Below, piece after piece: positions 14,480 to 57,162 of a stretch of DNA of 64,000 nt. Origin of the DNA: Octopus sinensis (Eukaryota). Every line of letters begins with the position of its first letter. Position 1 is the first letter of the stretch. Made by a program: the position numbers and the translations under genes. The notes below the pieces were generated by a model. The model worked only from the letters and a program-made list of their open reading frames with translations. It ran no database searches and was not told where the DNA came from. The stretch is taken from positions 98,580,001 to 98,644,000 of the forward strand of contig NC_042999.1 of the NCBI RefSeq assembly GCF_006345805.1. Reading direction: 5' to 3'.

Positions 14480-14753
14480 ATGAAGAAGTCTCAGAGAAGA
14501 TGTTTGTTAGTGGTAGCCTTCCTGGTGTGCTGCTTACAATTCTCAGCTTCAGCACTCAACGAGACTTCCCATGAACCTGTATTTGACGTACAACCATACA
14601 ATGGTTCAACAACGCTTGTTCTCTTGGATATTAATCAGAAGTTGAACACCAATGGAAGTTGCTCACAGCCGGACATTCGCTCACTGTTAGTAGCTTATTC
14701 AGCACTTTGGACCCATGAATACGTCAACATAGCTTCTTCACAAACGAACCGTG
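14480..14753 (+). CDS. Coding exon 1 of a divergent class C GPCR-like gene (signal peptide + start of Venus-flytrap domain)
   Basis: ATG at 14480; MKKSQRR + hydrophobic LLVVAFLVCCLQFSASA looks like a signal peptide; N-glycosylation sequons NET, NGS, NGS. 'CSQPDIRSLLVAYSALWTHEYVN' aligns by eye with mGluR 'CG...GIQRVEAMLHTLERIN'. Ends CGT G|gtaagt (phase 1 donor at 14754). Acceptor ttttttgttattgcag lies 1 nt before the ATG. Confidence 0.8.
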
Positions 14754-15789
14754 GTAAGTTATCCTCCTTTGAAATATCTTTTATTCTTATATATAACTAA
14801 CATGGCTTGAAGAAGAATGGGCCATGCCATGTCTATTTACTGACCTTTTCTCTACGTGAGTTCATTAGCAGTCCACATAAATTATGTCCTTGTGATTCAT
14901 TAGGTTAGAAAGAAATTCACCTTAAATAGTAACACCTTATGATTCTTAAACACCAATTATTTCATTTCTAATTTCTCAAAATCCAGTTTCTATTTCAGGC
15001 TTCGTAGTTAGGTTTCCCTGGTACTTAAAAAGTTTCGCTATTTTCGCTTACCGTTTCTTCAGGCTTCTGAGTTTTGACAGCTTGAACTGCACTTCGTTGT
15101 CATCGCTGTTTAAATATGGCTAAGAATTGTTTGTTTTTTTAAAAAAGACAAAGAATTTTTATTAACTATTTTATTTTTGGTACCATTTCATTTAATCCAT
15201 TAAAAATAAAATAAAATTGCTTCTGAACATTATTGTTTTTTTTATCATACAACATAAGAAAAGGCGTTATATTATTGTTTTGAAACTAGAAAACAACTAT
15301 CCCAGACTCTCCGTACAAACAATTGTTAAAACGATAAAAATACATTCTCTTTATAATTCCAGTAAATAACAGTTCTTTAGAATTAATGCGATGTGAGGAA
15401 AAAATACGGAAGCAATATAGAACATAACTTACATTAAAAAATACATACGGGAGTAATGTGTTCCCGAGAGTTTACCGTAAAGTGAAATCCCGCGACGCGA
15501 AATTAGCTTTCCTATCGATTTTCATGATATAAAATGATGATGCTTTCCGACAAATATGTTCGAAAAGACAAAAGAAAAACAAAAAATAAAAGAGAAAAAA
15601 GCAAGAAATAAAAAAGAGTATAAAGAAAAGAGAAAAAAAGCAATATGATCACTCTTTTAAGCATGAAAATAACACACATTGCAATATGTATACATAAAGA
15701 TATTTCAAGTGAAATATATTAGAATCGTCATATCGTAGTAGGATATGTACTTACCACAAAAAAAATGTTGACTATTGTCTGAGAGGTAG

Positions 15790-16215
15790 TGATGGATAAG
15801 AGTTACTTAGAGGATGAGGTACGCTATCTTCTATATTATAGTCAACAACTACTTGAGAGGCGAACTTATTCGAAATTGTTTGATGTTTATGACCTATCAA
15901 GTTTTTGTACAGCTCGGTATAGAAATTGAAGTCGTTGTAAAAACCCTTTGTAATTACATTCACGATTAGGGTTGTGAGTTGTCATTGGCAAAAACTTGCT
16001 GATCTTCCTCTACAAGTTACAATATTTAACAATATTCTTTGCAGTCAGCTTAAGTGCATCTGTTGGAATTTCTGTATTTTCAACGGCATCCTTAGTTTGC
16101 TTTTGTTTTAACAATATCAGCCCATTGTTAAATAAAGTTTCCCTAAGGGGCACGAAAAACTCAACTATGTCATCCTACATGACTTTTTCCTGCAACATTA
16201 CATAATTCTTAAGCT
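15790..16215 (-). pseudogene. pogo/Tigger-like transposase C-terminal relic
   Basis: Minus frames give 'DDIVEFF...LKLTAKNIVK' and 'FYTELYKNLIGHKHQTISNKF', like the Tigger tail 'D..EL.....LT.K.L' / 'Y.E.YK....QT.I..FF'; stops and frameshifts present. Confidence 0.4.
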
Positions 16216-18068
16216 TAAGATCAGTAGCCATTCCCTACTCTCTGAAAAAAATACAAATATCCTTGTATAGAACTGTGTGCTTCACAGTTCCAGCGAAGCG
16301 GTATTTGGCTGTTGTGCGCATGCTCACATGTCCGAGATAAGAAGCTTCACGGTAGGGAGAGAGATCACTGTCGTTCATGCAGTACCGGTAAAAGGTAGTG
16401 TTTCTTTTTGACTTTGCGTGTGTTGTTTTTTAAAAACGTGTTTGTATTCTTGAATGTGATAAAGTGTAGAATTAAATTATTATCCTGCTTGCAACTTCAG
16501 TGTTGCTATCAGGATTTGAAAAATAGGACAAATTTTCCCCCTTATTTTGTGATTTAGGGGGGATTTTTGAAAAGCAAGGGGTAATTCGCGGCGGTATTGA
16601 GTGAACAAATTAAACACATTATATGGCAGTAGCTAAAATGCAAACCGATTAACTTTATGTATAAACATTCTTTTTATATGTTTGTTTCCTTTTACACAAT
16701 ATTAAAACAACGGCTACAAATTTTCTGAAGCAGCACCCCAACTAATTTTATCTACGAGCCGCTACTGTACTTTATAATTCTAATAAGTGCAAAATCACGT
16801 AAACTGAAGTAGCCGTAACAGGAGATACCTGTATTTAGTTATTTGAATTGTTGCGTCATGAAATACTGGATGTTTAGAATCGCTTTGTCTGCATTCCTGG
16901 CGAAAACATCTCTTAACAGTCTCCTTCACATCCAGATCTTCTCTAATTGTAGCTGAAGCTTATAACGTGGGTGGGAAAAAAAAGCAGCGATGTTGTTGTT
17001 GTTGTTAGCGGTGTTAATATTTGTTTTTCTTTTTTGTACTGGAAAGAAAGACGGAGACGAAAACGTATGTAATAATCGACAAACGTCTCAACTGTCCAAC
17101 ATTAAGCATAAAAAATAAAAGCGTCTAAGTTATGCGCACTAAATTTTCTGCAATAGTCAGTAATCTTGTATACGTTCATCTACGTTATAAATTCATATGA
17201 AACGCATTTGTAACAAGCAAAATCCCAGTAGAGACAAGTGATGATAATAAGAGATGTCAGTAAACGGTGACAGCAAAAGAAGACATAAGAGTGCGTTAAT
17301 ATGACAGAAATGCATTCATTAAATGGCTCATTGGACATGTGGATTTATCAACGAGATAGTTTCAAAATCAATAATGATTTCGAATACATATTACCCTGGA
17401 GCTGTATTTCTCTCGTGAAACTGTCTTGGTGACCAGATCGCTGTTGAGCAACGAAATTTTGGCAATAGAAATTAGTGCAAACTAAATTGAAAGATTTTGT
17501 GGAGCTTTAAATAGCTGATAAGGCTGTTCACCAATGTAATTTATCAGTTTAGTTTTATAGTTGTTTCAGTCAAGGGACTGCGGCCATGCTGGGACATCGT
17601 CTAGAAATGTTTAGTTGATCAAATCGCCCCCAGTACATTTTTAAAAAAGTCTGATGCTTATTCTATTCGGTTCTTTTGCAGAAACTTAAACTAGACAACA
17701 TCAATTGTCGAGCTTTGGTGGAGGACAAACGCACATACATATATTAGTCACACACACACACATACACATAGACACACATTTATATACACACAATGTGTTT
17801 CTTTTAGTTTCCGCCCACCAAATCCACTCACATCGGCCCGAGGCTATAGTAAAAGATACATAATCGGTCCGAGGCTATAGTAAAAGACACATGTCCAAGG
17901 TGCCACGCAGTGAGACTGAATCCGAAACAATATAGTGGGGAAGCAAACTTCTTATCACATAATCACTTACTCAATTTAATTATTGTTATATTTATGAAAA
18001 TTAGCTTTGATTGAATTCATCTTGTATGTATTTCTGTCTAAGACTAAATTTAAAATGTTTACACACTC

Positions 18069-18161
<93 letters not shown>

Positions 18162-19772
18162 GCTGTCTGTCTATCAATCTATCTACCCATCTACCTATAT
18201 TTTCTCCCTTTTCATCTCTCTCTCTCTCTCTCTCTCTATGCACACTCATATATACGTGTATACTTGTATATAATTTACACACACTTGTGTATAAATATAT
18301 AATTACTCATATGTATGTATATATTCATGTATATGCATATGCATATATGTGTGTACATCAACGCGCGCGCACTCTCATATACATACACAAATATATAAAA
18401 ATAAGTCTGTCTGTAAAATATGGTTATTCCTTAAATAATCTATGAGACTCAGAGGAAAGTCAGCATTCTCACTTTTCATAGGAAACAAAGAAGCGGAAGT
18501 TGACCTCTGTAATTTGTCCGCCTACAGAGGACGTTCTCTTAGGAGGCTCTAGGATAGAAAATAAAAGTCTATTCTTGGATATAAACAGAAATACATGACT
18601 TTTATACTGGTGAATTGGAATCAGTATCTGAACTATATTGGTTATTGTAACAGTTGTTGAGATTAATGGTTTTTGTAGCCTGTTACAGACGGGTTGAGAA
18701 TCTGGACCTAGAAAACTCCTAGCTAAGATGTAAGCTTGTCTAAGACTTATGGAGGAAGACAAAAAGTAGCTCATGCAATGAAGTTTTTAATCTCCACACC
18801 ACCGATGTGGTCAAAGGGAAATGTATCTTCGATGCAGGTTGGCACCAGTTTTGTTTGAGGACGTAATACCCAAATGCTGAACATAGGAACAAATATCGTC
18901 AGGTCTCCATTCTGACGCTCTAATAAATCCACCAATCTAATAAATCCACCAATCATACTAACGACGTAGTTGCTACATGGTCGCTCTTGCTAGATATAGC
19001 TGCAAAATATCCGTGAAGCCTCCACAACTCTGTTATAAAATATAGGAAAAATTTCTGTGCAGTTTTCAATACATTTACCCCTAAAAACACAAAATGACTA
19101 TAATTGTATACTATGTTCCTATAATAACTTTAACAACGAGGGTCCTTGCTCTGAAGAAAAGTTGTTACAGTCGTTAGAGTGTTGAATTGAATAAATCTAA
19201 GGCACTTGTTCCGACTCTTTACCTTCTGATTTCTAATCTCGCCGAGATCAGATTTGACTTTCAGTATCTAAGGGAGATGAAAATCAAAAAATTATTCAGA
19301 TGTCTTGAACACTGGTTATACATAGTGAATATCAGTAAAATGTATAGTCACTATAAACATACATATGCTGTTTATAGTGAACACTATAGTGGATAGTTTT
19401 CAGATGTTCACTCGCCAGTGTGCAGGTATCCAGTGAACATTGAAAAGTGCCTAGTTAGTACTATTTATATTGAGCCTATAAATGGTCACACGACCAGTTA
19501 GAAATAGCAACTAAATCTGTTGCAAGGCACATCCGACATCTTAACAATCGAAGATACATAGAATACCAGAATCCCAGATACACTGCGGTCAAAGTTATAA
19601 GTCGAATGATTTTTTTCTTATCTCCTCAATCAGGGTTGAACTGGGGCTAACAACGACTAGATTATTGTCTGAATGTTTAATCGACAATATCCAGGTGTGT
19701 TATCAATTTTTTCCAAACGTTAACTCAAATTTAAGCAGATATGTAGTGAATGATGGCTTGTGTTTAATCAGT

Positions 19773-19995
19773 GAAGGCACACGGCTTAGCGGTTGGGGGT
19801 TTTCAGCTCACGATCATAAGGTCATTAGTTTGATTCCCGTTGTCCTTGAGCACTTTATTTCACGTTGCTCCACTCCATCCAGCTAGCAAAAATGAGTTCT
19901 ATCTACATTCCAAAGGGCTAGCCTTGTCGCATTCAGTGTCACGCCGAATAGCTATGAGAATTGCGTTGAGGATATGTGTATCTGTGGTGTGCTCC
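19773..19995 (+). mobile_element. Degenerate tRNA SINE sharing its 3' part with family C
   Basis: Head gaaggcacacggcttagcggtt...tttgattccc; CORE-like 'gttgtccttgagcacttt'; then 'attccaaagggctagccttgtc...gtgtcacgccgaat', matching the minus strand of ~50650-50705. Confidence 0.6.
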
Positions 19996-20658
19996 TGAAG
20001 CAACTTCTCAGCACTGAATGCATATCTATAGATCACAAAATAAGTAACGATACAACTTTGACAGACCAATTGATTAACTATTTGATCAATTAATTAGCTA
20101 CCTAATTGATTGGTAATAAAACTGAAGTAAAAACATAGCCAGTGTTTGTGCCTTTATTGGCACTATGTTGCTCCTAAAATATAGTAATGAGTGTCTGTGT
20201 GTGTACAGAAATGCACACACATATTCCTCTTTTGCAATGAGTCACTTGCATTTCATTTGCAACAATAAAGTCCTTAAAGTCTTAAAAATTATTAAGCTTT
20301 CTAGATTTCATACTCTCATTTTCAGGATTTACATTGTTATTAGCGCTCGTAACTGCTTCGTTGTCATGACAGGTCAATCTTACTTTCGCTGTTTTGCCCA
20401 GTTTTCGAGATTTGATTGTCAGATGTATACATCCTTACACTCTTTTTAATTTTGCTTGTGACTTGTGAGAGTTTTGTGTGACTTGTCCGTTTTAACATTG
20501 GCCATACAGGCACAACTAGTTCCACCTTTCTCTCTCTCTCCCTCTCTCACTCACTCACTCGTATATTTCACATACCCTTACAAGAAGCATAAAACAAAAC
20601 TAGATATCAAGAGATTTCTGGGTAGTAAATACATCTGTACTATATGGATGTGTTGGAC

Positions 20659-20893
20659 CAGTATTTCTCAACCAGGGTTCATATAAGATTCTGTTCTTAA
20701 ATTTTTTCTGCTATAAACTGGATATGTTTCTACAATAAACAAAATATTTTAACAATTTTTTTTATACAGTTCCTAATATTTACACATAATTATAGGACGT
20801 TGTTTTTAAGCGTCAACTGGTTATGGGGTCCATCCAAATAAAATGGGAATCAACGGGATCCATAGGTTAAAAAACAATGGCTGAGAAACACTG
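20659..20893. mobile_element. hAT-type MITE
   Basis: TIRs CAGTATTTCTCAAC / GCTGAGAAACACTG; 8-bp TSD tgttggac (20651-20658) / tgttagac (20894-20901). Confidence 0.8.
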
Positions 20894-23800
20894 TGTTAGA
20901 CAATGATGGAAGTATTACTCTTGACCTGCAAGTAAATGAAACAGAAGAAAAGTTGAGCAGGGCTTGAATCAAAAGCATATAGAATTACTTGAATAGAAAA
21001 CAGAAATAAATCCTGTCATTTTTTATTGGTACTACACTATCGTGTATGTCATTGCGTGTGAATGTGTTAGTGTGTGTATGCATGAAGGGAGAAATAGAGG
21101 AGGAGGAGAGAGATGAGAACAGTGTTGGTCTCTTTGTATAAATACAAAGGCTTGGAAGAAAAAGTCTGTCCCAAAGGTATTGGCATTGTATGTGAGAGGA
21201 AATTGCTTCAATCGGGAATTGAAATTCAATGACGGTTTGAGCTTTGCTCTAGTTCATTTTAGACGGTGTGACTTTCTCTTTGAATGAATTCTTCTGAAAA
21301 TTCTGGCACGGAATAAAAAAAAGAAAGAGATTTAAGCTTTCACTTTACGAGCTTCTAACATGATTTAATGTAAACAGCCTTGATGATAAATTAACAGGAT
21401 TTTGATAAAAGCGAATCTAAAACCCCAATCTTTAGAAGTACGATAAGAATAATAATGGACAAATAACCGTTTTGAAGTCGATTCTGAAAGTTATCTTTTG
21501 CAATTTTGAAGGTTTGAATTTTTAATTTTATAGTGAGATATAATATTTGATAATTAGCTGCTTGATTTGTTGGTTGGTCGCTTGGTTGTTTGGTTGGTTC
21601 GTTGGTTGGTTGGTCGTCGTTGTTGTTTAACGATATGTCTGTGTTAATTTAACGTGTTAATTTGACCCAGGTCAACCTTCGCTCAAGCAGGTCTGTAATC
21701 AAAAACATTCAAATTCTCTTCATGTGACACTTGAAAACGTTTGCAAGGACTTAACCGAAGAGGAAAGTCCTTAATAATTTATAATTACTTTCTTCTATTT
21801 ATATAGTAGATATATCTGTACTCACTGTTTCATTTGTATTCATCGATGCAGTTAATATCGATGTTTTCTTATTTATTGAAGCATGAATTATTCATTTGTA
21901 ATTCATAATAACACTATAATACTCTGTTCAAATAATGTAAATACAAGGATAAAAATTCATAATTCTTATGCAAATTAACATCCCTAATCAAAAATTTATG
22001 TAGATACAAATAAGTGACAGATGGCTGTGTTGAAAGCAAGTCAGTTTCCAATGCATAAAAGTTTCACAACTTTCACTTTCCTTTTGCAAATGCTTTGGTG
22101 TTCATCGCAGTTATAACTAACTGTTAATTTACCCAATGTATCAAACAGTAAATTGATAGCATGTAGGCAGCAGTGGTGGTAATGTTGATGTTGTTGGCGG
22201 TGACAGGAAATAGCAAAGTATGGAAATGAAGAATAGCTAGATTGAATCAATTACGTTTGTTACTTGAGATGGTAATGCTGAGCTCTAGGTCTTCCATAGA
22301 GTCGGTGACAATGTGAGGATGGGTTCTAAAAGATTGACCTTTCCTCTAAATATATCAGCCGACGATGATATCTACAATGCTGACCCAGTAATCTATAAGC
22401 GTGTGCATCACCTTTTTATATTTCCAGTGTAGCTTTACTGTTACAAGCACTGAAAATAGAATATCTGGAAAGGTTTCAACCTGTTATCAATTTCATATCA
22501 AATAGTGTGTATACCAAATACATGTGCATATCAAGTGATGTGATACTTTTCGAAGTATCGTAGAATATCAAATCATTGTCAACCTTTTACACTTCACCCG
22601 AAAATGTAAGGCTTTCTGTATAGTGAAACCTGTGAGTGCTGAAGATACCATATGGTGCTCACTATAATGTATATGATTATAATATTTGTGGCTACCTATG
22701 TATAGACCTTGTGTTCATATTGCTGTACACCTCTTTGTTTTGTTTCTAGGAGAAAACTTTTACTTGGAAGGATCCTTCGTCGATCTTGCTGATGAACAAT
22801 CAGTTTTTCGATGGACTAAACATCTATGTCGTTAAATTAGCGTTTAACGGACAGTAATTTACAGATACGTATACAGTTAATGTAAATTCATAAGCAGAAC
22901 CAGCGTGACAAAATGTAACAAGGCTGTTTCTCTGAATTACAGATACAATCCATCTGACAAGCTTTCACTAACCCGATTCCACTCACAAGAGTTGGGTTGA
23001 CTTGAGGCTTTGATAAAGATATGAGCCCATGATACCACGCTGTATGATCGAACCAAAGAGCTTTTGAATTGCGGAGCGAAAGTCTTAATCCTTCAGTTAT
23101 GCTTGCATTAACACTTTATTCTAGACTGCATCAATTCACCTAACTTCGGAGACAAGACATCGAGCTGCTAGAATTAGAAATCCGATTTCTTTAATATCAC
23201 ACACTAACGTTTGCAAGAAAGAAAAATCTCTTGCATAAGAGATATTGTCGTAGATAAATAAAAAGATGAAATGGCGACAACAGGAACGTCAGAGCTGACC
23301 TAGGGATAAACAATAAGAACAATAACAAAAACAGCAACAACAACAACAACATCATATCAAGTCAATCAAGTCAACAACAACATTGCATCAAGTCAATCCA
23401 GTCCTTGACAAGGATCTCTCAGTCGTTTTTGTCTTTGCCGCTTTATTACTAGATTTGACTCTTGCTCTGTTTATAGGGTGGTATGTGATGGTTGGATATA
23501 TACTTAACAGTTTTAATCGTAGTTAAAAGTTTTATGCACGGACCATGTGGGTTAAGGGTTTTCCTTAAACAGATATAGATAACCAGCAAAAAATAGACAT
23601 CGGTTGATATTATTGGATTACCTGATCGAGAGTTCAACCTCTACTGCTGAATTTTCACTGTTGTAGCTAAATGTACGTCATTTAGCTACAATAGCGTAAC
23701 TAAAGTTTTCGGTGCCCGGGTATAGATACACTTTTGGTGAAATCCACTATCACCTTGACAAACAGGCAGGATAACTAAAGAAACATTTACCCCTGCATCG

Positions 23801-24324
23801 GGAGTGACTGTCTGTTCAATCGTCCCCTTCTTACGGAAACTCTAGTTTTATCAAAAGGGTAATTTATCACTTCTATGTTTGACGTCATAAGACCAGGACT
23901 AACCACCAGTAATTTGAACCCTTCTTGAAGCTAGTTACATTTTTTCCTATACCCGAAAGTACAACGAAGTTCCAGTCCTTGTAGGTTGCTACATTTCATG
24001 TGTGTTGATGCTCTTAAAAAAGATACGAATGTTACAATTCTTTATTATTATTGTTTTTTTAATATATTCTTTGTGCGAAGTCCAAAATATCTTAATATGT
24101 AAAAGTGAAAAAAGAAGTGAGCTGGCAGAATCGTTAGCGCGTCGGAGAAAATGTTTCGTGGTATTTCTTCCGATTCATTACATCCTGAGTTCAAAATCTA
24201 CCGAGGTTGACCTGTTTTTCATTCTTTCGGAGTCCATGAATTAGGTATCGGTCATGTATTGAAGTCGATGCACTCGACTATTCCTCCTCTCACTAAAATT
24301 GCTGGTTTTGTGCCTATAGCAAAA

Positions 24325-24870
24325 CCGAACTGCCAGAACAGTTAGAGCGTCGAGCAAAATGCTTAGCGGTATTTCGTCTGCCGCTACGTTCTGAGGTCAG
24401 ATTCCGCCGAGGTCGACTTTGCCTTTCATCCTTTCGGGGGTCGATTAAATAAGTACCAGTTACGCACTGGGGTCGATGTAATCGACTTAATCCGTTTGTC
24501 TATCCTTGTTTGTCCTCACTGTGTTTAGCCCCTTGTGGGTAGTAAAGAAACAGGTATTTCGTCTGCCGCTACGTTCTGAGTTCAAATTCCGCCGAGATCG
24601 ACTTTGCCTTTCATCCTTTCGGGGTCGATTAAATAAGTACCAGTTACGCACTGGGGTCGATATAATCGACTTAATCCGTTTTCTGTCTTTGTTTGTCCCC
24701 TCTGTGTTTAGCCCCTTGTGGGTAGTAAAGAAATAGGTATTTCTTCTGTCTCTTTATGTTCTGATCAAAATTCCACCGAGTTCGATTTTTACCTTTAATC
24801 TTTCGGGATCACTGGAGCACTGGAGTTTATCCTTCTCCTCAAAATCGATGGCCTCGTGCCAAATTTTGCA
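24325..24870 (+). mobile_element. SINE family A tandem multimer
   Basis: Units restart at ggtatttc at 24368, 24553 and 24736, the latter two directly after the tail aaagaaa(t/c)a. Confidence 0.85.
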
Positions 24871-26250
24871 TAACGACACATTACATAATTTCCCCGTGGG
24901 GAAGATCACAAGCTATGTAACGATCACTAGAGTTTGTTCTCTTTAGGTCCACATAGAAAGATTAAGACTATTATTTACCTACAAGTATTGTAAAAGACAT
25001 TTGAAAACTTTAGAATAATTGTATAAAATACTACAGAAATTTGAGAAAAATGGATGGTTTCCAAGAAAATGTAAATGTAAAATTTTAGATTCTATATTTG
25101 TTAATTTCATGCTTTTCTTTTTATCAAGTTCGGCTTAAACTATTTTCTACATGACTTGGATGCAAAACTTCTGACTGAATCAATATTTGCAGTCCAAGTG
25201 AAGATTGTCAGTATCTTGTTGAATTAATTTACCGAAACTTAGGGAATTCATGTGGTTATATTTATTTTATACGTTGATATAACGAGATAAGGTCATGTGC
25301 AATAGTTTATGAGTGTGTGTGTGTGTGTGTGTGTGGTACTGTACCTAGATAAAATATTACTACCACTATTACTGACGAAGCATTGAGAAAGTTGGGAGCT
25401 GCTGGCTTCATTCTGTACAGTTTAGCATTGTAGTCCATTTCCTCTTGTGGAGGAAGGAAATAACACAAACAATAATAATTCTTTCTAATGTTGGTACAAA
25501 CTAGCAGTTTTGAGTGGGTGGCGGAAGTCGACCATAGTACTTGACTGGTATTTTATTTTATGAACCTGCGAAAAGAGGAAAAGTAAACTTACACCTGCGG
25601 GATTTGAACTCAAAACAAACAAAAATAATTCCCCTAAAGGATAGACAGCACAATAGACACCGGCGGAATCTGAACTCCGAACCTAAAGAATACGGATAAG
25701 CATTTTTGTCTGGTTGATTAACTGTTCTGCCAGCTCACCGCTTCACAGCAAAGTATTCAACTATTGGGAGCTAAAATATTTCGCTTGCTTTCAAAACGTC
25801 TACATGAATGAAATATGTTTTACTTTTTTTTTTCCGACAGAATGAGATTTCTCTTTCTCTGGTATTTTAGGAAACTGGAATGCTAAAATTTATTAATCCT
25901 TGTGGTACCATCGGGAATTTTTCCAGGTCATATTATTGTTGCAACTTATTTTCCATTTTTGTTTTTTCAGTTTTATATGACACTCAGCCAGGGAGGTGTT
26001 GTAGCAGAAATGGTTGAGTGTCGAACCAAATGCCATGCGAGATTTTTTACTTACATCATCTTAACTTTTAAGTTCAACTTCCACTGGGGCTGATTTTGTC
26101 TGTGGTTCTTCCAAACTCAATAAAATTAATACCACTTGAGCGCTGGCATTGATATAGTCGTCCGTATCGCCCATTAGACTTCGTTACCTTATAAGAATTC
26201 ATGATACACAGTGTTGATTTGCTAAAATCTCACGTATACGTAACAAGTCA

Positions 26251-26355
<105 letters not shown>

Positions 26356-26839
26356 CGCAGGAGTGGCTGTGTGGTAAGTAGCTTGTTTACCAACCACATA
26401 GTTCCGGGTTCAGTCCCACTGCGTGGCACCTTGGGCAAGTGTCTTCTACTATAGCCTCGGGCCGACCAAAGCCTTGTGAAAGAAGGAAACTGAAAGAAGC
26501 CCGTCGTATATATGTATATATATATATATATATGCGTGTGTGTGTTTGTGTTTGTCCCCCTAGCATTGCTTGACAACCGATTTTATAGCGAGACCGATAG
26601 AATAAGTACTGGGCTTACAAAAGAATAAGTCCCGGGGTCGAGTTGCTCGATTAAAAAAAGGCGGTGCTCCAGCATGGCTGCAGTCAAATGACTGAAACAA
26701 GTAAAAGAGTAATATATATATATATATATATTACTCTATATATTACAGGATGTGTTAGTTATTTGGGATAAAAAAGTTAAGAGACATGAGTAGCCCAAAC
26801 TTTAAATATTGTCCCTGTTTTCAACCCCAACACAACTTG

Positions 26840-27235
26840 GATGCTTCTTATGCGGAGATGAACAAGCATATCCTTCTCGTCGCTCTAACCCTAAACAACA
26901 GTGATTCTGAGATTGGCACCCTCACTAATTGTCACCAGACCCTTCATACTTTAGATCAGAAAAAACCACCTGGTCTCTGCTGGGAATGTGTCTTCACAAG
27001 TTACAAACAAAATAAAAAAGCGAAAAACATTCTCGACGGTCAGGCGTTGTCAGAAAAATTGAATTTGTCGAACAAGTCCAGGTTATCATCAACGAGAATT
27101 GCTAATTATCTCCTTGAGTCAACGATTAGACGTGTAGTGAGCGAAAACAACAGGTGCAAATTCTATGTCATGAGAAGAGGGCAGTCCATATCCGATAAGA
27201 CTCGGAAGAACTACATTCCAAAGGAAAACATCGTT
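26840..27235 (+). pseudogene. maT/DD37D-like (Tc1-mariner) transposase N-terminal relic
   Basis: 'EMNKHILLVAL..NNSDSEI' and 'ESTIRRVVSENNRCKFYVMRRGQSISDKTRKN' resemble maT-type 'EMKRHA..VAL....SD.EI' and 'E.TIRR.V.ED.RYKSYVMRRGQF.S.KT.EN' (recall, not searched). Confidence 0.6.
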
Positions 27236-46500: not shown

Positions 46501-48324
46501 TATTGATGTCTTAAATGAGTCTAAGCAATCATTTGATGTCTTATTGCAATCACGAAAGTTTGATTCATCCCTATCTGGCTCTATCTTCCTTCCTCTTTTA
46601 TTCCTACCTCTTCAGCCCGCATCATTTCTGCAAGAATGGTCACACGACCTTATTACATAAATTGTCGTCAAAATGATTAATAGGGATAACAAAAATCCTT
46701 CTGTCTCGAAAACATTTTCCTACAGATATATTGAGTGGGAATAAATAAAAATTAATGAAGCATCGATTCAAACGTCTATACTAATTTCTTTTTACAACAC
46801 TGATTTCGTCGTAGTTTAAAATAGATGAAACATGATCAATAGTATCTATAACGAACTGCTGCTCTTTCTTATAAGTGTGTGTGTGTGTGTATAGGTGTGT
46901 GTGAGAGAGTGAGTGAGTGTATGTGTGTATGTATGTGTGTTTGTTATATTTATTGCGAGGATATGGTGAAAAAAGGTCTCAAATGTACGAAAATAGGTTA
47001 CATGACAAAAAGTAATTTTTTTTTTAAATGTTAAAAAATTATAAATTTAGACCTATTTCCCTGAAAGGGAAATAAATGACAGAAACGAACACCGAACAAT
47101 AACCGCAAAGACACTTCCTCGTTTTATATAATTCTCACATCACGTTCTGTCTTCTTTTTAGACTATAGTTCTCAGGCCTGAAGGCCAGCAATTGTGAACT
47201 ACAGCTGAAAATGGTAAAAAGTTTTTAAATCTATCTATAAGACGATTGTCATGATAATGAAATGTGAAGGCAAACAAAATACGTTACCTTGAAATAAAAA
47301 TGTTGCTTAAAATAAAAGATTTTATTATATGTTTATATATATTCCATCAGTATCTTATTTGTTTTCTTATTTCATACATAATGATATTGGACCGTACTTT
47401 GCACAAATTTTCTTGGTTACGTCTATAAATAGACTAGATATTGTTTGTAGTTGGTATTGGAGAATATTAACGCTAATTTATTCTTATTTTATCAGATTTT
47501 GTTCGCAAGATCGTGCTTGATATACAAACAAAGAGACAATGGGCTGGCATAGAATATTCTAAACAGATAGTTTACAATTAGCTGAACACACGAATAATCT
47601 GCGTTCTTTACTGAACCAGTGATTAATCTCGTTTGAAAGAATGATTAATTTCATAGAAAGAGTGATTAATCTCTTTAAAAATCTCCTTGATTAATTTTAT
47701 TGAAAGAGCGATTCTTTTCACCAGTCTGGGAACTTTTGCAATGGCTATGGGTATTGACTCTCCTCTTCGATCTAGAATTTTAAGAAATTTCGTACAATAG
47801 TAATTAATTTCGATGAAAGATAACCAGTTAAGAGTTCTTTCCTGTTTTTAGTGATTAATAATTTTTCTGACAGGTTATTAGTGTTCTTGATGACTAATAT
47901 TCTCACGTTTATCTGGAGTTGTTTAACTCATAGCTACACCTGATCGAGCAGACCTATGATTTAAACATTCTGGGGTTACCCATCGCAGACTAAATTACCT
48001 AATTTCACCTTCCTGACGAAAGGCGGTAGCATATAAAACTTTGACTTACACACTGAAACTGTACACACCGAACTGACAAAACTAAAATGAATTTACATAT
48101 TAGTGAGAAGAGTTACAGGCAACAGCCATTATGTTTCCAAACAGTTATGGATTCGAGAAATTTATGATGGTAAAGATTAGTGGATAGACGTCACAAAGTA
48201 AAACACATATATATACACACTCATCACGCACAAACACACACATAAATATATATATACTCAAATATTTATATATATATATGAATATATATTCATATATGTG
48301 AATATGTATGTATATATTTTCATG

Positions 48325-48361
<37 letters not shown>

Positions 48362-48391
48362 GCATATACATTCATATATATATGCATATAC

Positions 48392-48475
<84 letters not shown>

Positions 48476-49523
48476 AAACTATGTAAATGTATTTCTCTCT
48501 GAAGAGAAGTAGAGTTGTTTATAAATGCTCATCAATATAGAATTCCATTATAGGGACAGCACTTCTGCGAAACGATCGTAATATGCTTTAAAAACTTAAT
48601 TCGAAACTTTTAAACTATCATATTTATTATTATATATTTATACTTATACACATTTACATATTTATATATATATTCATAATTTTAATACAACTATTATTTT
48701 ACACACGTATATATCTTCCTGGAGAATGTTCTAATATTGATTTCTTGATATTAATATTAATATATTATATAAAATATACATAGTTGCATGTATTTATGTA
48801 TGTGTATGTATGTATGTATTTATGTTTATATGTATGTATGCTTATTTGTCTAGGCTATATTCTTTTTTTTTTTTCGTTTGGAGAATTCAGGCTGGCCACA
48901 AACCAAGTGGTAAGGCTCTTTTCTTTCGGTAAAAAAAAATGTTGGGCATTTGTGGTTGTCTGAATCGGCTGATGTTTGTACATATACATATTTATGCTCA
49001 TGGATAACTTGTATTTTAGGAGCAGACATTCGTTTCACTTAAGTATTCAAATATCTGTGCTTCTCATATTTTACTCCTCAGTATACAAGTGTTTGGGCTT
49101 CACTCTTCTGTGTGCTTATGCATGATAAATGTAAACACGTGTGTATGTATGTATGTATGTATTTATTATGTACGTATGTATGCATGTATGTATGTATGTG
49201 GTGTGTGTATGTGTGTGTGTTCTTTGAATTTTAAATTCTTCTTGAGAGGTTTCAAACCGGTTGCTCACAAAGCAACAAGACCTTTTGAGTTACGAGAGTT
49301 CCCTGTGTTTGTGAATATGTGGTTGAGTTGGTGTGTTGGTTGAGCTGTCGACGCATACACCCAAGTGTGTGCATCTATTCACATAAGAATCTCACATGGA
49401 GAATTTCTGAAATGCCTTACAAAAATTTTCGCTGTACCGCTAATAGATTGGATTTGGAGAATCCGCTTCAGTTTCTTTTGCTCTTTTTTGGGGAAACCAA
49501 ATGTTTCAAGATTTTTGTGCAAA

Positions 49524-49942
49524 TGTATGTATGTATGTATGTATGTATGTATGTATGTATGTATGTATGTATGTATGTATGTATTTATGTATGTATTTAT
49601 GTATGTATGTATGTATGTATGTATGTATGTATGTATGTATTTGTGCAGATTTTTATGTTTTGTTTTATGTATGTATTCTCATGCATATTGTTCTATGTCT
49701 AGTCATGCTCATGTACAATTAAATGATAAACTTCTGGAAAGTTTTACGGATTTTTACAGTTCTAGTGATGGCTTGGATCTGTAGTCATTGAATCAGCTTT
49801 TACCTTTCTAGTTTTGAGAAGCCTAATTTCTCAAGATTGGTATTTAGGCAGTGTGTTACATATCCCACTGCTCCAACAACCTGAGCTTTTAATCTGAATG
49901 GAGTAGTTGTAGATTCCTCAATAGTTCAGCATAGGTATTTTC

Positions 49943-49979
<37 letters not shown>

Positions 49980-50990
49980 ATGTATGTATGTGCGTATCTG
50001 TGTGTGTGTTTTATGTATGTATGCATGCATATATTTGTATGTATGTATGTATGTATGTATGTATGTATGTATGTATGTATGTATGTATGTATGTATGTAT
50101 GCATGCATGTATGTATGTGTGTTTGTATGTGCGTGTATATTTGACTGGCTAGATATGTGGGTAGATGTGAGTTTCCCACGATGATTAACTAATAAAGTAG
50201 CATACACTGTAACGGAGGCTTATCTCTAGCGATTTTTAAATCTTATTTCATAAGAATTTTATGAGAATTTGTGCACGAAAAATGCCTTTTGGCTATTTAA
50301 TGACTAAGTATATTTTACGTGGCAAGAGGTAGATTTTATTATCGGCTACCAGGTGATTTCTTATAATTCTATAGAAAAAATAAGGTTTTGTGAGATTCAT
50401 TCAGAAATTTCAGTGATCAGTGTATTAGGGGCTCTGCTGATAGCGGGGTGTTATACCTATACATGAGAATTAATTAATTAATACATACATACATACATAC
50501 ATACATACATACATACATACATACATAGCGTGGTACTCCGTCGGTTACGACGACGAGGGTTCCAGTTAATCGATCAACGAAACAGCCTGCTCGTGAAATT
50601 AACGTGCAAGTGACTGAGCACTCAACAGACACATGTACCCTAACGTAGTTCTCGGGGAGATTCAGCGTGACACAGAGTGGGACAAGGCTGGCCCTTTGGA
50701 ATACAGGTACAACAGAAAGAGTGAGAGAAAGTTGTGGCGAAAGAGTACAGCAGGGTTCACCACCACCCTTTGACGGAGCCTCGTGGAGCTTTAGTTGTTT
50801 TCGCTCAATAAACATCTATGTATGTATGTAATTGTGCAGATAACGCCCGGTCTGGGAATCGAAACCGCCATCCTACGACGGCGTGTCTGCTGCCCTAACC
50901 ACTGGGCCATTGCGCCTCCACCATACATACATACATACATACATACATACATACATACATACATACATACATACATACATACATACATGA
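49524..50990. repeat. Cluster of (TATG/TACA)n tetranucleotide tracts
   Basis: Tracts at ~49524-49640, 50030-50110, 50481-50527 and 50923-50990; also 32124-32210 and 36798-36855. Confidence 0.95.
50527..50919 (-). mobile_element. SINE family C (ggaggcgcaatggcccagtggttagggc...)
   Basis: Minus-strand tRNA head with GGTTTCGATTCCC; body interrupted by (TACA)n; 3' part shared with the 19773 element. Confidence 0.8.
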
Positions 50991-53869
50991 TGGCTGCAGA
51001 CTCGTGCTCAATTATTGCCTTCACCTCATCGAAAGCTCCACACATGCGAAAGCTACGATCAACCATTTTTGTGATAGTTCTTAATCTTTTATCAAGCGAT
51101 GCCTGTGCAAGAGGATTTATTTTTATAGTGGGGAAAGTATTTGTACAAATCCAATCCCACTCTCTGAACATGGGCAACATAAACTCGAAAAGAACTAGTC
51201 TACATCATCGAATATTATCAGTGTCGCAGGTTTTCTCTCAGAGATACCCTCTCCTAGAGAGATGTTGGGACCACAACAGAGGGCCTCCCATTCCCAGTGG
51301 GCCAACTGCGCGCCTGGATACCAGTCCAGGTATTTCCACGTCCCCGCACATACATACATGCATACATACACATGTACACATACATACACATGTTGGATGG
51401 CTGTTGACTGCTCATGTGCTCTTCCGCCCTTTGACAGGTCTTATTTTACGTCCAACAATCACCCTCCTCACCAAGCAAACAAGCTTGATGGGGGTGCCAG
51501 TTTAGTCACCGACGATCCAACCATGCAACAGGTTGTACTGGGTTACATGTTACCAGTAGCGCCCGAGAGTGACCTGACATAACATACATACATGTGCACA
51601 CGTGCATGTACATGCACACACACGCTACTTCATCATACGAAGCACTCAAATAGCCTCACTATCTCACAATAACTCCATATGTTGAGGCTGACTATCTCCG
51701 AAGATCTCATCCGGTAAAAGCATATCCCTAACATTGCAAGGAGAGCTTCCCAATGACTAACTCAATTCTTCAGGCGAAAAAATACTTTGGTCCTCAAAAA
51801 TTTCTGATTCATTGCTACTCTACAAAATTCAGATGAGACCCGAAATAAAGAATTGCTCTCACATTTGGGATTATCACTAGTGCTACCCACACAGATATCC
51901 CTACACTGCATCTGGAAAAGGGCCACGGATTCGCTCCTGTCCCTGGCACGGGCGCATTTTATTCTCTCTCCGTCATTTCTGTCAGTACTGTCATATAACT
52001 GGTGTTGTTACGTGGCATCCGTTTATGTCGCTTTAATATAGTGATACAACAAATAAAGATTGGGAAAAAATAGGTAAAGGACAGAAATGAGTACTGGAGT
52101 TGGTATGATTGATTAAATCTCTTGGTGGTGGTGCATCAGAGTGACCAGAGGTTGAAGCCAGCAGAGGGTTCAAAGAATATGTATGTATGTCTTATTATAT
52201 GATAATAATAAAACAGAACTCAATATAGCGGTGTTTGTATCAGCACTTGCATATATATACATGTGTGTGTGTGTGCGTGTGCGTGTGTGCGTGTGTGTGT
52301 ATGTGTGTGTATGTATGTGTGTGTGTGTGTGTGTGTGTGTAATAGATACATAACAATGAAAATTTAATTCTTCCGAAGATAGAAAAAAATGAAGAAAAAC
52401 CTTAATCGATTTTTGAACCTTATTGGGTTCTCATCAGAGGTGTCTACATCAACTTGACCTTTTCTAGAGAAACAAGAAGCCAGCCCGTTTATATACTCAA
52501 CAAATCCAACAGCTACGGTGAACTGGAGCTATTGCTTTGCATGTCCCTGCAAAAGCTCTACTATGATACAAAATTTTTTTATTCTTCATATATATCTTTG
52601 TATATTCGTTTACGGAGATAGCTAACAAACTTTTGGTAGATCTCAAACAAAGCATCACGGTGCCATATGTATATTAATGCACTGTGAATTCCAGAAAATA
52701 TAAGTTAAGTCTTTTGAAATTACATATTGATATCAGAATGTCTTGAAAAGCATATTACTCATAATTTAGCTTAACACAATTATGATTAGTAAAACAAAAT
52801 TTGTCTTTGACTTTAAAAGAGTATTCCAAGCGAAGGGCGCCGAAATTCTTTTCCATTTACTCCTTAATGCGCCTGTAATTGCAGCACAAAGTGAAAAACA
52901 ATGAAAAGTATTGTTTAACATTGACGTTCGATTCATGTTCCTGCAATATTTCACGTGCCTGGTTAATTTGACCTTTTTTTGTTGTTATTATTTACTGAAT
53001 CTGGTGTAATGAGGTTTGTCCATAACTTTTGCAGGACCTCTATTACTGATAAGCTTAGAGCCGCTAATGTTCCATTTAAAGTGTTGCCGGTCAACATCTA
53101 CAGGAAAGATATCGGAATTGTCAATATTCTAGAGGGCTGATGTTCTGGGGAGAAAGGACTAAGAAGAGCGGTTAGTGCGGCGCCTGGGAGGTTATCACGA
53201 CAAGAATGAAGAAAGGTGGAGTTGGTGGGGGTATCTAACTGATGGAAGTACGAGAATAATGTGTTCCGGGAAGCAGAGGCCATTATAATCGCGATGCAAA
53301 GGACTGACCAATGATTGACGATACCTGTTACTGAGCCTCACGGCCCATAGGCATTACTCAGAAATTCTATTTCAGAATTACCACTTTAATCTGGATTCAT
53401 AATAAAGTTTAATCCTGGGTTCAAGTTTAAGCTGAAATTGTATAAAAGTACATGCTTAATAGAAATCAAAAAGAAGAAAAAGAGAATTTCCCTTTCACCT
53501 AACAACAATTCTTAGATCTTTATTATTTCTAAAGGAGGAAAATATGAAACTATCCAAATAACTTGTAGCCCCAGGGAGATTTTTAAAAACTATATCCCAC
53601 ACTTTTTTTAAGCGGAGAAAAGTTAAGTGTGTTTTAAGATACATCACATTAAGATGAATTTTTCGCTGATTGACCATGCTTTACAATGACCATTTTAAAT
53701 TATACAAAATTAGTTTGCTTAAGTATTAACAGAATTGTGCAGATAAGTCTCCTTCCTTGTCTCCCCTTTTCTGAATCTTTTCCCTCCCTCTTCTCTCCTC
53801 TTCTCTCTATTTATCTCCCTGTCTGTTTGTCCGTTTATCAATCTCTTCCTTCTTTTCTCAATTTACAAG

Positions 53870-53965
53870 GTTTGAAGGTCTTTGATTGCTGTAGTTCTCC
53901 AAAAAGAGCAGTGGATATTCTGTTGAGCGAGATCAAAGGTCATGGATGTTCAACAACGATAAATG
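53870..53965 (+). CDS. Coding exon 2 of class C GPCR-like gene
   Basis: Long polypyrimidine tract + caag| acceptor; 96 nt, phase 1 to phase 1; encodes (G)LKVFDCCSSPKRAVDILLSEIKGHGCSTTIN(G), matching the class C 'G.EIRD(S/T)C...A' motif; donor G|gtaagt at 53966. Confidence 0.8.
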
Positions 53966-55122
53966 GTAAGTATGTTTATAATACATTCATGAGTTTAAAA
54001 ATTAGTTTCAAACTATTAGTAATTCTCACTTGCAGTGTCGACTTTATATTTCTGTAACGATTACAAATCCTTTGAGTGACCAGGCTTGAATCGAACTCAG
54101 AACACCAAGAAACACAACTAAACACCATCAGGCACTATGTCAAAGTACTTCTACAAATTCAGGCAAAGAGTACGGTCGATTTAATCAGCATCACTTCTTA
54201 AACAGTACAATTCAAAGATCTCACCGAAACTAAACAAACATAACGAAGTGCAGTGAATCTGTTTCTCTGCCACCCTACCAGTTCTACCATCCTCTGTTCA
54301 TTTTAGTATTATCACAACAGCATTATTAATAATCCTTTCTAATATAGACACAAGGCCTGGAATTTGGGCGAAGAGACAAATCGATTACATCGGTTCCACT
54401 GCTCAACTAGTACTTATTTTATCGACCCTAAAAGGATGTAAAGCAAAGTTTACCCCTGTGGAATTTAAACATCCTATTATTAATAATAAGTATTATAATC
54501 AATAATACGTCAAAATTGGGAATATGAGTTTTGTTGTTGCATAGCTTTAGACGAAGCAGGTTAATGATAAAACGACATTTCGTCTTTACTTATTATTTTC
54601 AGAATTAGTGTAACCCTGAACTGGACGGTGAATTAGCTGCAACGTTAGAGCATGAAACGAAATTCCACTGACATATTTATTCCGTCCCCTTGCGTTCTGA
54701 GTTCAAATCTCAATGGGGCCAACTTGGTCTTTCGTTTTTGGGGACCAACGAGTAAAAGTGTGATAGTCTGTTCGATACAATGATATATAGATAGATAGAT
54801 ATCATACATGCCGTATTTATTCGCAAAGAAGTCTCATCTTTTGGACATAGCTTGTTGCTTTTTTCTTGTGTTCCTTTGGCACGTATAATGCGTAATGTTT
54901 AATATAACTTATATTCAATCCTCAACACTTAGCTGGTAATATAAAATAATTATTTGAGAGTTGATACGTATATTTTCCAGGCGTTAAGTTACAAAAAAGT
55001 TTTTTTCATTTTTTTTTCTATTTCTTATCTTGTTTATAGTGTCATCCGTGTGTAAGAAACACATTACATGCATTAAGCTTTCATTGAATATTGATAAGCA
55101 CGATTTTGTTTGCATTTTTCAG

Positions 55123-55283
55123 GTATTGTCATATTCACTTCTTTAGAAGTGTTTTCCGAAATGAAAAATTACCTGCAGAGATTTCAGATCCCTCAAGTTA
55201 TTATTTGGGGAGAACTTCAAAAACCGCCTAATCCAACACCATTCCAAACGATCATACGACTGAAATCAATTAAAAAGTCAAAG
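55123..55283 (+). CDS. Coding exon 3 of class C GPCR-like gene
   Basis: tttttcag| acceptor, phase 1; encodes (G)IVIFTSLEVFSEMKNYLQRFQIPQVIIWGELQKPPNPTPFQTIIRLKSIKKSK, resembling mGluR '[26 protein letters not shown]...F.R'; donor AAG|gtaact at 55284 (phase 0). Confidence 0.82.
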
Positions 55284-55332
55284 GTAACTAATAAGTGTCA
55301 ACATCATATTTAATCGAAACAGATGAAATTTC

Positions 55333-55405
<73 letters not shown>

Positions 55406-55706
55406 TTATGGCATACAGAAAGTAGCACTGCTGCTACCGCATACATCCGACGAAAAACACTTTCAATGCAGTAAAAATTACAACCCTAAAACGAACTTCC
55501 GTGCATACCCAAGGCACACAGAGCGCGTTCTGCAGTGCAGTAAAAGCACGTAATAGAAATGAAATAGAAATTACTGAACACGCATACACACGCATGCACA
55601 CACGCATACACACATATGGTTCAAAATTAGATTTTTAAAGAAGTCAGATAAGCGAGGGAACGACAAACAAGGTGTATTAGTTTAACACTCAGAAAAAATG
55701 GAAGTG

Positions 55707-55742
55707 TCTTTCACGTTTCGAGCCTATGCTCTTCTACAGTAA
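55707..55742 (-). ncRNA. Degenerate Penelope-type hammerhead motif (different family)
   Basis: Minus strand CTGTAGA A GAGC atag GCTC GAAA CG T G: perfect 4-bp stem II and GAAACGT, but core A6->T and G at the cleavage position. Confidence 0.4.
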
Positions 55743-56415
55743 GGAATGAGGGAGAAAACAGATGGAGAGAGGGAAAAAAGAGAAACATGCATCGACTAAT
55801 AGTTATGCGTGTTGAATATTATATATTCTATCTGTTATACTAAAGTGCTAACGATAGATTCATGTGGTACAAAAATCTGTCACGTAGTAGAAAGATGTGC
55901 GAAAAAGAGAGAGAGAAAGGGAGAGAGAGAGAGAGCGAAAGAGAGAGAGAAAGCGAAAAAGCGAGAGTTAGTTGAACGCATACACGCAGTCACATAAGAA
56001 CTCTATTGGCGCGCACATGCGCTAACTCACACAAGCAACAATTAACTATGTATATATGTGTGATAGAGTGGTGGTGGGATATCTATATATGTGCTCACTC
56101 CAGCTATGTTCGTCTGTGTGTGTGTGTGCACGTGCCAATAGCATTATTTTGTGTAAGCACCAAGAAATTCATCATTTTGTGCAAGCACCAAGAGATTTGT
56201 ATGCTTGTGATATTTCTTGATAACAATCATGGTGGCAAAAATACACTTTCACAGTTACTCATTACAGGACGCGTAACACTTTTAGTAATTATATAAATAC
56301 AAGACTTCTACTGTTACATAAACATGCATACGTAAACACGCACACATACACACATAGGCATGCATGTCCTCATATGTGGTCTTATTAAGTTTTAATTTTT
56401 TCTTGTCTTTTACAG

Positions 56416-57162
56416 GCTCTGGTGGAATTAAGCCAATCTTTGGATTGGTCGTATATTAACACTCGAGTGAGTGCAAGTGCTGATGCTTTAGAAGAATATA
56501 AATCCTTTTTGGAACAAGTAGCTCTTAGTGAAACGAAAATATGCATATCAATGGAAGAACCCGCCAGTATTAACCAACAAAGTCAATCCTCGACAGTTCT
56601 CTTCTTTAACAATGGATTAACTAACTCCGGACAACACGAAGCTGCTATGCTCAGCGATGCCACAAGTAAAATTACACTTTTCATTTCGGATAGTAATTCA
56701 GATCTAAAACAGATCGTCTTAAACGCAACAACGAATGGACTTCTACTACGTGAAGATTTGCCACCCCTAAAGAACTTTCCATTGGCTGATGTCCTTGTAA
56801 ATAGATCAAACTTAATGATCGACCAGGCTGGCGAAATTTCTCGTCATTGGCTTACCCAAAACCATTTCTGTAAAATAAACAACGATGTCCTTGGTAATTG
56901 TGATGTTCCTAATATTCAGAGCGTTTTGTCGGAGGCTTTGAACTTGAAATCTATCCATGGTGTGATTAAAGCTATTAAAATGCTATCTGGTGATTCTAAT
57001 GTCACTTTAAACGACTCAACAACAGCAAATAACAATGTTACAAATATCACAAGAGCAGACGATAGCTGGAATGACGTTTTCAAAATGTCGAATATCGAGA
57101 ACATTTGGGAAATGAACACGGATTTCAGTCTATTTGCTACTGTCGGACCTGTTTTTGAAAAG
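56416..57162 (+). CDS. Coding exon 4 of class C GPCR-like gene (rest of Venus-flytrap / ANF_receptor-type domain)
   Basis: ttttcttgtcttttacag| acceptor, phase 0; 249 open codons of non-repetitive sequence. 'ALVELSQSLDWSYI...KICIS' matches class C 'A.VD....F.W.YV...ICIA'; 'WLTQNHFCKIN...NCD' matches the 'W...F.C....C' pattern; many N-X-S/T sequons; donor AAG|gtaggt at 57163. Confidence 0.85.

Follow-up and report, generated by a model that had tools for sequence, protein, structure and literature searches.

What kind of receptor is encoded by four exons that are spread over more than 40 kb of the Octopus sinensis genome, the first of them separated from the other three by an intron of 39 kb? 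The exons lie on a stretch of 64,000 nucleotides (NCBI RefSeq assembly GCF_006345805.1, contig NC_042999.1, positions 98,580,001 to 98,644,000 of the forward strand; hereafter the window). A first-pass annotation had joined them into a highly divergent G-protein-coupled receptor (GPCR) of class C with largely lost amino-acid-binding residues. The best explanation overall is that the window probably contains coding exons 1 to 4 of an octopod gene whose product is a class C GPCR with three tandem Venus flytrap (VFT) modules; the identity and architecture of this receptor, a triple VFT followed by a seven-transmembrane (7TM) domain, are very likely correct. What the window holds is VFT1 only, the most distal and most diverged of the predicted modules.

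The gene model agrees in all respects with the four-exon, in-frame splice proposed by the first-pass annotation. The four segments (274, 96, 161 and 747 nt; phases 1, 1, 0 and 0; coordinates in Table 1) join into a 1278-nt open frame encoding 426 amino acids, and each is bordered by an AG acceptor that follows a pyrimidine tract and by a donor beginning with GT (gtaagt, gtaagt, gtaact and gtaggt). Open reading frames (ORFs) show the gene in fragments only, as had been remarked (14480-14800, 53686-54057 and 56422-57174, exon 3 being too short for listing). The spliced product matches residues 1-426 of GAB1600313.1, a 1776-aa 'metabotropic glutamate receptor-like' protein of the octopod Argonauta hians, in 426 of 426 columns without a gap (642 bits, 76% identity; 79% for exon 1 against residues 1-90 by tblastn). 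Because of this gapless alignment, no coding exon is missing or misbounded, and since it accounts for all residues, no additional coding exon of the receptor gene lies inside intron 1. A word-indexed protein search with the product and with the family VFT1 alignment retrieved three cephalopod fragments only and no annotated protein from any species.

Two sequences from other cephalopods bear on the exon structure independently, and together with the Argonauta match they put the gene model far outside what chance would give. The first (L001) is a transcript-like contig of 1553 nt, assembled from a public sequencing run; it contains a single uninterrupted frame homologous to all four exons, colinear with the 426-aa product at 39% identity and ungapped at each of the three junctions, as one would expect of the spliced mRNA of a more distant cephalopod. 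Near its 3' end, at about 1490-1515, this contig has a 1-nt frameshift, beyond which frame +1 continues ...SNQTRALEPNTTFSLFATV, as the genomic homologue does; the end of the protein called from it (P0002), ...FQIKHVP, is accordingly an artefact. The second (L002) is a 47-kb genomic contig of another cephalopod, in which the exon 4 homologue begins after ...ttttacag and ends ...CAGAAG/gtaaag (a slash marks the exon border) at the same codons, the positions of introns 3 and 4 being identical to those in the window. The receptor gene is under purifying selection: compared with contigs of a sister species, the exon 4 protein is 90% identical, 46 of 741 bases differ, distributed 13/8/25 over codon positions 1/2/3, and the ratio of nonsynonymous to synonymous substitution rates (dN/dS) is 0.27. 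When the flanking introns are included, identity is 85.8% over a 1296-nt overlap.

The N-terminus is built like a signal peptide, with a basic n-region (MKKSQRR), a 14-residue hydrophobic core (CLLVVAFLVCCLQF) and small residues at -3/-1 (SASA/L); judged by eye, it would direct the product into the secretory pathway, and the nine N-x-S/T sequons of the 426-aa model are compatible with an extracellular location. As an acceptor-like tract ends one base upstream of the ATG, an unannotated non-coding 5' exon may sit upstream of exon 1. The first exon carries the family-invariant residues D50, C61 and W77 (family alignment), and the second D97 and C99, the latter being the partner of C61 in the cysteine pair that class C VFTs conserve in lobe 1. 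L131, E154 and K174, which align with S151, T174 and D194 of metabotropic glutamate receptor 3 (mGluR3), are borne by exon 3. The fourth exon contributes LDWSYI, KICIS, FISDSN, the C329/C339 pair and a loop rich in N-glycosylation sites, and ends with GPVFEK. Since it stops just before the last strand of VFT1, the window is without that strand.

That this module is a class C ligand-binding domain, as the first-pass annotation had claimed, is borne out by profile comparisons. The Pfam ANF_receptor domain (PF01094) is detected at residues 92-231 with 31.3 bits against a curated cut-off of 25.4 (E = 1.4e-7). Searched alone against solved structures, the product matches mGluRs only, at E of about 0.07, whereas a VFT1 profile built from eight species retrieves mGluR3 first from the PDB (2e-15, both lobes), followed by mGluR5, 7, 2 and 1 and then by the calcium-sensing receptor (CaSR). 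All of the best 60 of 88 structure matches at E<=0.01 are mGluR1-3/5/7 or CaSR; none of these 60 is the amino-terminal domain of an ionotropic glutamate receptor (iGluR) or a natriuretic-peptide/guanylyl-cyclase receptor, the two relatives that had been named as pointing away from class C, and an identity of either kind was rejected on these matches. FQIPQ, (N/D)W(T/S)Y, ICI and FC...C are conserved columns in the mGluR3 alignment, and the landmarks first picked out by eye (C61, DCC97-99, FQIPQV, LDWSYI, KICIS and FC329...C339) are all present and coincide with family-conserved columns aligned to mGluR3. C61 and D97-C99 fall on the ECG/DTC columns of VFT3, which in turn align to the lobe-1 cysteine pair of mGluR3 (hhalign, transitive). 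An AlphaFold2 model of the product, made from a 4-sequence alignment, was unusable (predicted local distance difference test 36.8, predicted template modelling score 0.32) and was not used, so that the VFT fold is assigned from sequence profiles.

The first-pass annotation implied an ordinary ectodomain, in which a VFT and a cysteine-rich domain precede the 7TM; this does not hold, as the orthologues show the first of three tandem VFTs with no NCD3G-like domain next to it. The layout in the family alignment is signal peptide, VFT1, CxxxCxxCxxC, VFT2, CxGWCPxCxxC, VFT3, Cx3-4CxC, 7TM and a tail with FERPYSLPGTL, in proteins of 1652-1776 aa that have a signal peptide on the first module only. 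Pfam recognises three ANF_receptor stretches and one 7tm_3 in the Argonauta, Sinanodonta, Haliotis and Lottia proteins (in Argonauta GAB1600313.1, 7tm_3 spans residues 1471-1711 at 7.6e-23), and, at the threshold applied, two plus 7tm_3 in that of Mizuhopecten; the protein from Saccostrea, outside the Pfam scan set, is colinear in the family alignment. In none of five full-length members was NCD3G, the nine-cysteine domain, matched at E<=0.01, and linkers with three to four cysteines occupy its place. This domain is present in mGluR, CaSR and T1R and absent from GABA-B receptors, so that its absence does not disqualify the family from class C. The CxGWCPxCxxC linker was considered as a remnant of the CCWxCxxC part of the cysteine-rich domain, but the spacing is not exact and we regard this as a resemblance only.

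The modules differ in their nearness to mGluRs and in their conservation. The best solved structure is mGluR3 for VFT1 (2e-15), mGluR4 for VFT2 (2e-36), mGluR3 over nearly the full length for VFT3 (4e-53) and mGluR2 for the 7TM (1e-24), which has the motifs NxxEAR and PKIH; mean pairwise identity across molluscs rises from 22% in both VFT1 and VFT2 to 27% in VFT3, 46% in the 7TM and 51% in the tail. By hhalign, the homology of VFT1 extends through both lobes, with a probability of 98.9 against VFT3 (411 columns) and of 98.2 against VFT2. In the C-terminal 60 residues of family proteins P0004-P0010, the cytoplasmic tail is the best-conserved part, with an invariant KxDxxFxxExPxxLP, and an S(L/M)SY terminus is found in all family members shown but the octopod. 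The conservation of the tail points to an intracellular docking site shared by the family.

That these predicted modules belong to a single gene is confirmed in the second cephalopod genome. About 3 kb past exon 4, L002 has a 1.46-kb exon that opens ...cactcag/GTCGGCCAA (VGQISGAF...) and closes ...CAG/gtaaga, and a further exon opens ...gcaaag/GTCGGCGAA (VGEYNT...). Exons 4, 5 and 6 join at GT-AG borders, in frame and free of stops, to give 1390 aa, which are colinear with residues 398-1392 of the Argonauta protein. Introns 4, 5 and 6 of this contig (1351/4377, 5837/8476 and ~10190) are all in phase 0 and lie directly 5' of the (V/I)Gx(W/Y) strand that closes VFT1, VFT2 and VFT3, respectively, a strand that reads KVGHW in mGluR3. 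The phase-0 intron shared before each closing strand is therefore the likely trace left by duplication of a unit with exon borders at its ends. VFT2 and VFT3 each have their body in one large exon, that of VFT1 being interrupted by three introns.

What such a receptor might bind was approached by aligning the product and an mGluR3 fragment, whose numbering was checked, to the VFT1 profile (hmmalign); the equivalence of mGluR1 and mGluR3 residues is established from crystal structures. The positions of mGluR3 T174, D194 and Y222 (mGluR1 T188, D208 and Y236) are occupied by E154, K174 and D200, that of S151 (S165) by L131, that of D301 (D318) by S270 and that of K389 (K409) by serine in octopods. 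R64/R68 of mGluR3 (R68 corresponding to R78 of mGluR1) fall outside the aligned VFT1 region, and the matching helix, RSLLVAYSALW, found transitively via VFT3, is without arginine at the aligned place. The loss of mGluR1 ligand residues first noticed by eye is thus upheld at T188, D208 and Y236 and at the distal arginine. S165 and D318 had been described as possibly kept: candidate residues do exist (the conserved T129-S130 just before L131, and D269 adjacent to S270), but they are displaced by one to two positions, a shift that alignment error could account for. In the family as a whole, the amino-acid-contact columns (S/T/D/Y/D) are not conserved in VFT1, VFT2 or VFT3 in the profile alignment, and VFT2 has no recognisable segment bearing S151 and T174, its structure alignment falling into two separate stretches. 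Since the contact motif is missing from all three VFTs, the lack of a glutamate or amino-acid site extends, as far as sequence can tell, to the whole receptor.

Members of the family occur across molluscs. Run exhaustively against 1.84 billion representative proteins, in a library clustered at 50% identity, the VFT1 profile reached 17 proteins only at E<=0.001: one cephalopod full-length cluster (Argonauta, 2e-174), about one protein per bivalve or gastropod species (two near-identical ones in Sinanodonta), which match over their residues ~1-430 at 1e-18 to 1e-10, and weak non-molluscan matches. Members include Lottia V4B5C7, Haliotis XP_046561110, Mizuhopecten XP_021344993 and Argonauta GAB1600313, and the window product has every one of the residues invariant in VFT1 of the triple-VFT family (D50, C61, W77, D97, C99 and C220). 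Within the limits of a library so clustered, such a distribution is that of an old, essentially single-copy molluscan orthologue. The label of lineage-specific orphan given by the first-pass annotation must be abandoned, as colinear orthologues occur in bivalves, gastropods and cephalopods alike; on the chemosensory and heterodimer-partner roles that it also suggested, the present evidence is neutral.

The triple-VFT layout is present in databases as 'uncharacterized' or 'mGluR-like' predictions. We could not find it in the literature: searches turned up no account of tandem VFTs in class C receptors of eukaryotes, nor anything under the family accession numbers, the searchable literature being incomplete and a prior description possible. 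A cephalopod GPCR survey (PMC6408891) and a metazoan glutamate receptor phylogeny (PMC6307864) make no mention of multi-VFT class C proteins. That these receptors constitute an undescribed class C subclass, with three stacked mGluR-type VFTs, mini cysteine knots and a 7TM, single-copy across Mollusca, with relatives of two to five VFTs elsewhere and no amino-acid motif, is a plausible proposal to which we give slightly less than an even chance.

Among the other readings of these exons, the one that survives best is a chemosensory receptor of suckers or olfactory organ, belonging to a cephalopod-specific expanded family. It would fit with the part played by class C receptors in vertebrate chemosensation, with the rapid evolution of VFT1 and VFT2 relative to the 7TM and with the absence of the canonical amino-acid site. 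It is nevertheless unlikely, as about one protein per mollusc among the 17 matches indicates a single-copy orthologue and not the expansion of a repertoire, and tblastn with the orthologue found no second copy of the gene in the window. Less probable again is a secreted VFT-only protein, either a separate gene or an isoform retaining intron 4, that would act as a soluble binder or decoy, the long models of relatives then being fusions. If the exon 4 donor is read through, VGC is added before a stop is reached; this stop, three codons past the donor, is seen in two relatives as well as in the window, and no transcript was found that spans exon 4 to exon 5. However, early stops are expected by chance in AT-rich introns, and the donor consensus (AAG/GTAGGT and AAG/GTAAAG) is conserved. 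Moreover, exon 4 ends before the VGxW/Y strand that completes every VFT of the family and with which exon 5 opens, and the fused architecture has been annotated in at least six species by different pipelines, with a signal peptide on the first module only.

A conventional single-VFT orphan receptor, with NCD3G and 7tm_3 exons directly downstream, is what the window alone might lead one to expect, 426 aa being a near-complete mGluR-type VFT and the downstream layout being out of sight. This is very improbable, as after GPVFEK the Argonauta orthologue continues into a cysteine linker, two more VFTs and only then the 7TM, the second cephalopod genome has in-frame VFT2 and VFT3 exons directly downstream, and five family members scanned are without an NCD3G match. 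A decaying, functionless relic, for which one could cite the very divergent module (31 bits to Pfam), the huge intron laden with transposable elements and the lost ligand residues, is just as improbable given four open exons with intact GT-AG borders, zero indels against Argonauta across 426 residues, a dN/dS of 0.27 with changes concentrated at third codon positions, and a homologue transcribed and spliced in another cephalopod.

Some points weigh against the triple-VFT receptor that we favour and against the functions ascribed to it. The VFT2, VFT3 and 7TM exons of the gene itself fall beyond base 64000, and its triple-VFT architecture is for this reason taken from orthologues; no exon 5 or later exon was found in the window by tblastn, whether the query was residues 427-1776 of the Argonauta protein or the downstream exons of the second cephalopod. 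L001 stops just short of the junction between VFT1 and VFT2, for which we depend on several independent annotations and on the splice sites of L002. Because the structure model was unusable, the statements on the binding site depend on profile alignments that may be one to two residues off, and the functional role of VFT1 is drawn by analogy.

In class C receptors, closure and re-orientation of one VFT dimer is relayed through the cysteine-rich domain to the 7TM dimer. The mollusc receptor may likewise act as a class C dimer, in which a conformational change of the ectodomain would pass through VFT3, the membrane-adjacent and most mGluR-like module, and a short, rigid cysteine linker to the 7TM domain, which would then activate a G protein. 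VFT1, and VFT2 with it, would be distal clamshells that either bind a ligand other than an alpha-amino acid or serve in assembly or allosteric modulation, by analogy with the amino-terminal domain of iGluRs or the distal VFT of BvgS/EvgS. We offer this accessory role of VFT1 tentatively, as a possibility that we hold to be somewhat less probable than its opposite.

Comparison with known systems places the family closest to mGluR2/mGluR3, which provide the best solved-structure matches of VFT1 and VFT3 (mGluR3) and of the 7TM (mGluR2). They also share the landmarks FQIPQ, NWTY, ICI and, in VFT2 and VFT3, LCPxxxGLC, as well as the lobe-1 cysteine pair and, in the 7TM, NxxEAK/R and PKxH of TM7. 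In contrast to these receptors, the mollusc protein has three VFTs instead of one, linkers of three to four cysteines instead of a nine-cysteine domain and a different C-terminal tail, and its VFTs are without the S/T/D/Y/D contact set and the distal Arg/Lys for glutamate. Stacked clamshells are known from NMDA and AMPA receptors, in which a distal ANF_receptor/LIVBP-type clamshell sits atop the clamshell that drives the channel and has a part in assembly and allosteric modulation. This likeness is a working analogy only, as iGluRs are ion channels whose layers derive from different clamshell subfamilies, whereas the layers of the mollusc receptor are all mGluR-type VFTs and its output domain is a 7TM. 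The bacterial sensor kinases BvgS and EvgS, with a distal and a proximal VFT per chain, are the only tandem VFT receptors that our literature searches found; being bacterial, of another periplasmic-binding-protein class and with histidine-kinase output, they offer an analogy of layout and not family-level homology. A further comparison is with the orphan class IV mGluRs, of the type of Drosophila DmXR (mangetout), which have other residues in place of the glutamate-specific R78 and K409 and give no response to glutamate, although the residues that contact the amino-acid backbone are kept in their single VFT (PMC6307864). The mollusc receptor resembles them as an invertebrate mGluR-like receptor with the glutamate-specific residues replaced, but it is also without the backbone contacts and its VFT is triplicated.

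The weak matches to the VFT1 profile outside molluscs are themselves multi-VFT proteins: XP_074641006 of the nemertean Tubulanus (five ANF stretches and 7tm_3), XP_013773119 of the horseshoe crab Limulus (four and 7tm_3), XP_035691371 of the amphioxus Branchiostoma (two and 7tm_3) and XP_013389729 of the brachiopod Lingula (two, with no 7tm_3 match at E<=0.001). They differ from the mollusc family in module number, and their VFTs are much nearer to the consensus of Pfam, with E-values as low as 1e-202 where the mollusc family reaches 1e-24. All four are uncharacterised, and no paper on them was found in our literature searches.

The remainder of the window is AT-rich (30-43% G+C) and octopod-like in its dense microsatellites and copies of a putative short interspersed element (SINE). 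The core of this SINE-like repeat (GGTACTTATTTTATCGACCC) occurs in 10 copies where 0.01 would be expected by chance; no tRNA or other RNA family was detected in the window by ARAGORN or Rfam. The two degraded Tc1/mariner copies in intron 4 have 32-nt terminal inverted repeats (TACAGGGATTGTACAAAATAATGGAAACACCT) and an identical 195-aa ORF each, matching DDE_3 at 2.5e-11; their transposase is broken, as its N-terminal part, which binds DNA, is out of frame. Since the repeat unit of 1449-1450 bp includes flanking GT/TA microsatellites, the element was duplicated along with its flank and not inserted twice. Upstream of the gene, a tandem duplication ends about 290 bp 5' of the start codon and contains near-identical spurious ORFs (12050-12439 and 13116-13514). 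The strand-asymmetric block of intron 1, which appears to be pyrimidine-rich and then purine-rich simple sequence, gives spurious S/L/C/V-repeat ORFs of up to 469 aa on both strands. Nested genes in this intron were considered and rejected, the long ORFs being translated microsatellites or low-complexity sequence with no Pfam match.

Table 1. Coordinates of the receptor gene and of other features in the window (positions count from the first base of the window; empty cells, not given).
Feature	Position	Strand	Size	Description
Pyrimidine-rich tract and CAG	14460..14479	+		one base 5' of ATG (tcattttttgttattgcag/c ATG); splice-acceptor-like
Coding exon 1	14480..14753	+	274 nt	ends in phase 1; start codon, signal peptide, start of VFT1 lobe 1
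Signal peptide	14480-14554	+	residues 1-25	read from sequence
Intron 1	14754..53869	+	39,116 bp	gtaagt...acaag; microsatellites, SINE-like copies and low-complexity blocks throughout
Coding exon 2	53870..53965	+	96 nt	phase 1 to 1; GLKVFDCCSSPKRAVDILLSEIKGHGCSTTIN
Intron 2	53966..55122	+	1157 bp	one SINE-like copy at ~54340-54460
Coding exon 3	55123..55283	+	161 nt	phase 1 to 0; GIVIFTSLEV...FQIPQVIIWGEL...LKSIKKSK
Intron 3	55284..56415	+	1132 bp	position and phase identical in the second cephalopod genome
Coding exon 4	56416..57162	+	747 nt	phase 0 to 0; rest of lobe 1, then lobe 2
Intron 4 (beginning)	57163..64000	+	first 6.8 kb	gtaggt...; runs beyond the window end
Tc1/mariner-type element, two tandem copies	57667-58946 and 59117-60395		~1.28 kb each	inside intron 4
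SINE-like repeat, ten copies	cores at 4074, 4443, 9021, 24438, 24622, 34555, 35285, 42268, 54409, 62789	both		
SINE-containing unit	24368-24807		184 bp	repeated 2.4 times
Tandem duplication	about 12050-13100 and 13116-14190		~1.07-1.09 kb	98-100% identical blocks; microsatellite-rich
Strand-asymmetric low-complexity block	30000-34300			in intron 1; GC skew -0.46 (30-32 kb) and +0.39 (32-34 kb); AT skew +0.43

For the annotation of such genomes, the lesson of this locus is that a highly diverged first module lying across a 39-kb intron is easily missed. For class C receptors, three VFT layers that come without the standard cysteine-rich domain or amino-acid motif raise the questions of how signals cross the clamshell layers and of what is sensed, and the family is thereby a natural experiment for the activation mechanism of the class. 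If it is indeed an undescribed subclass, both its ligand class and the relay from three clamshells to one 7TM would lie outside the current class C mechanism. The family also represents a group of orphan receptors of molluscs, among them the cephalopods with their elaborate nervous and chemotactile systems.

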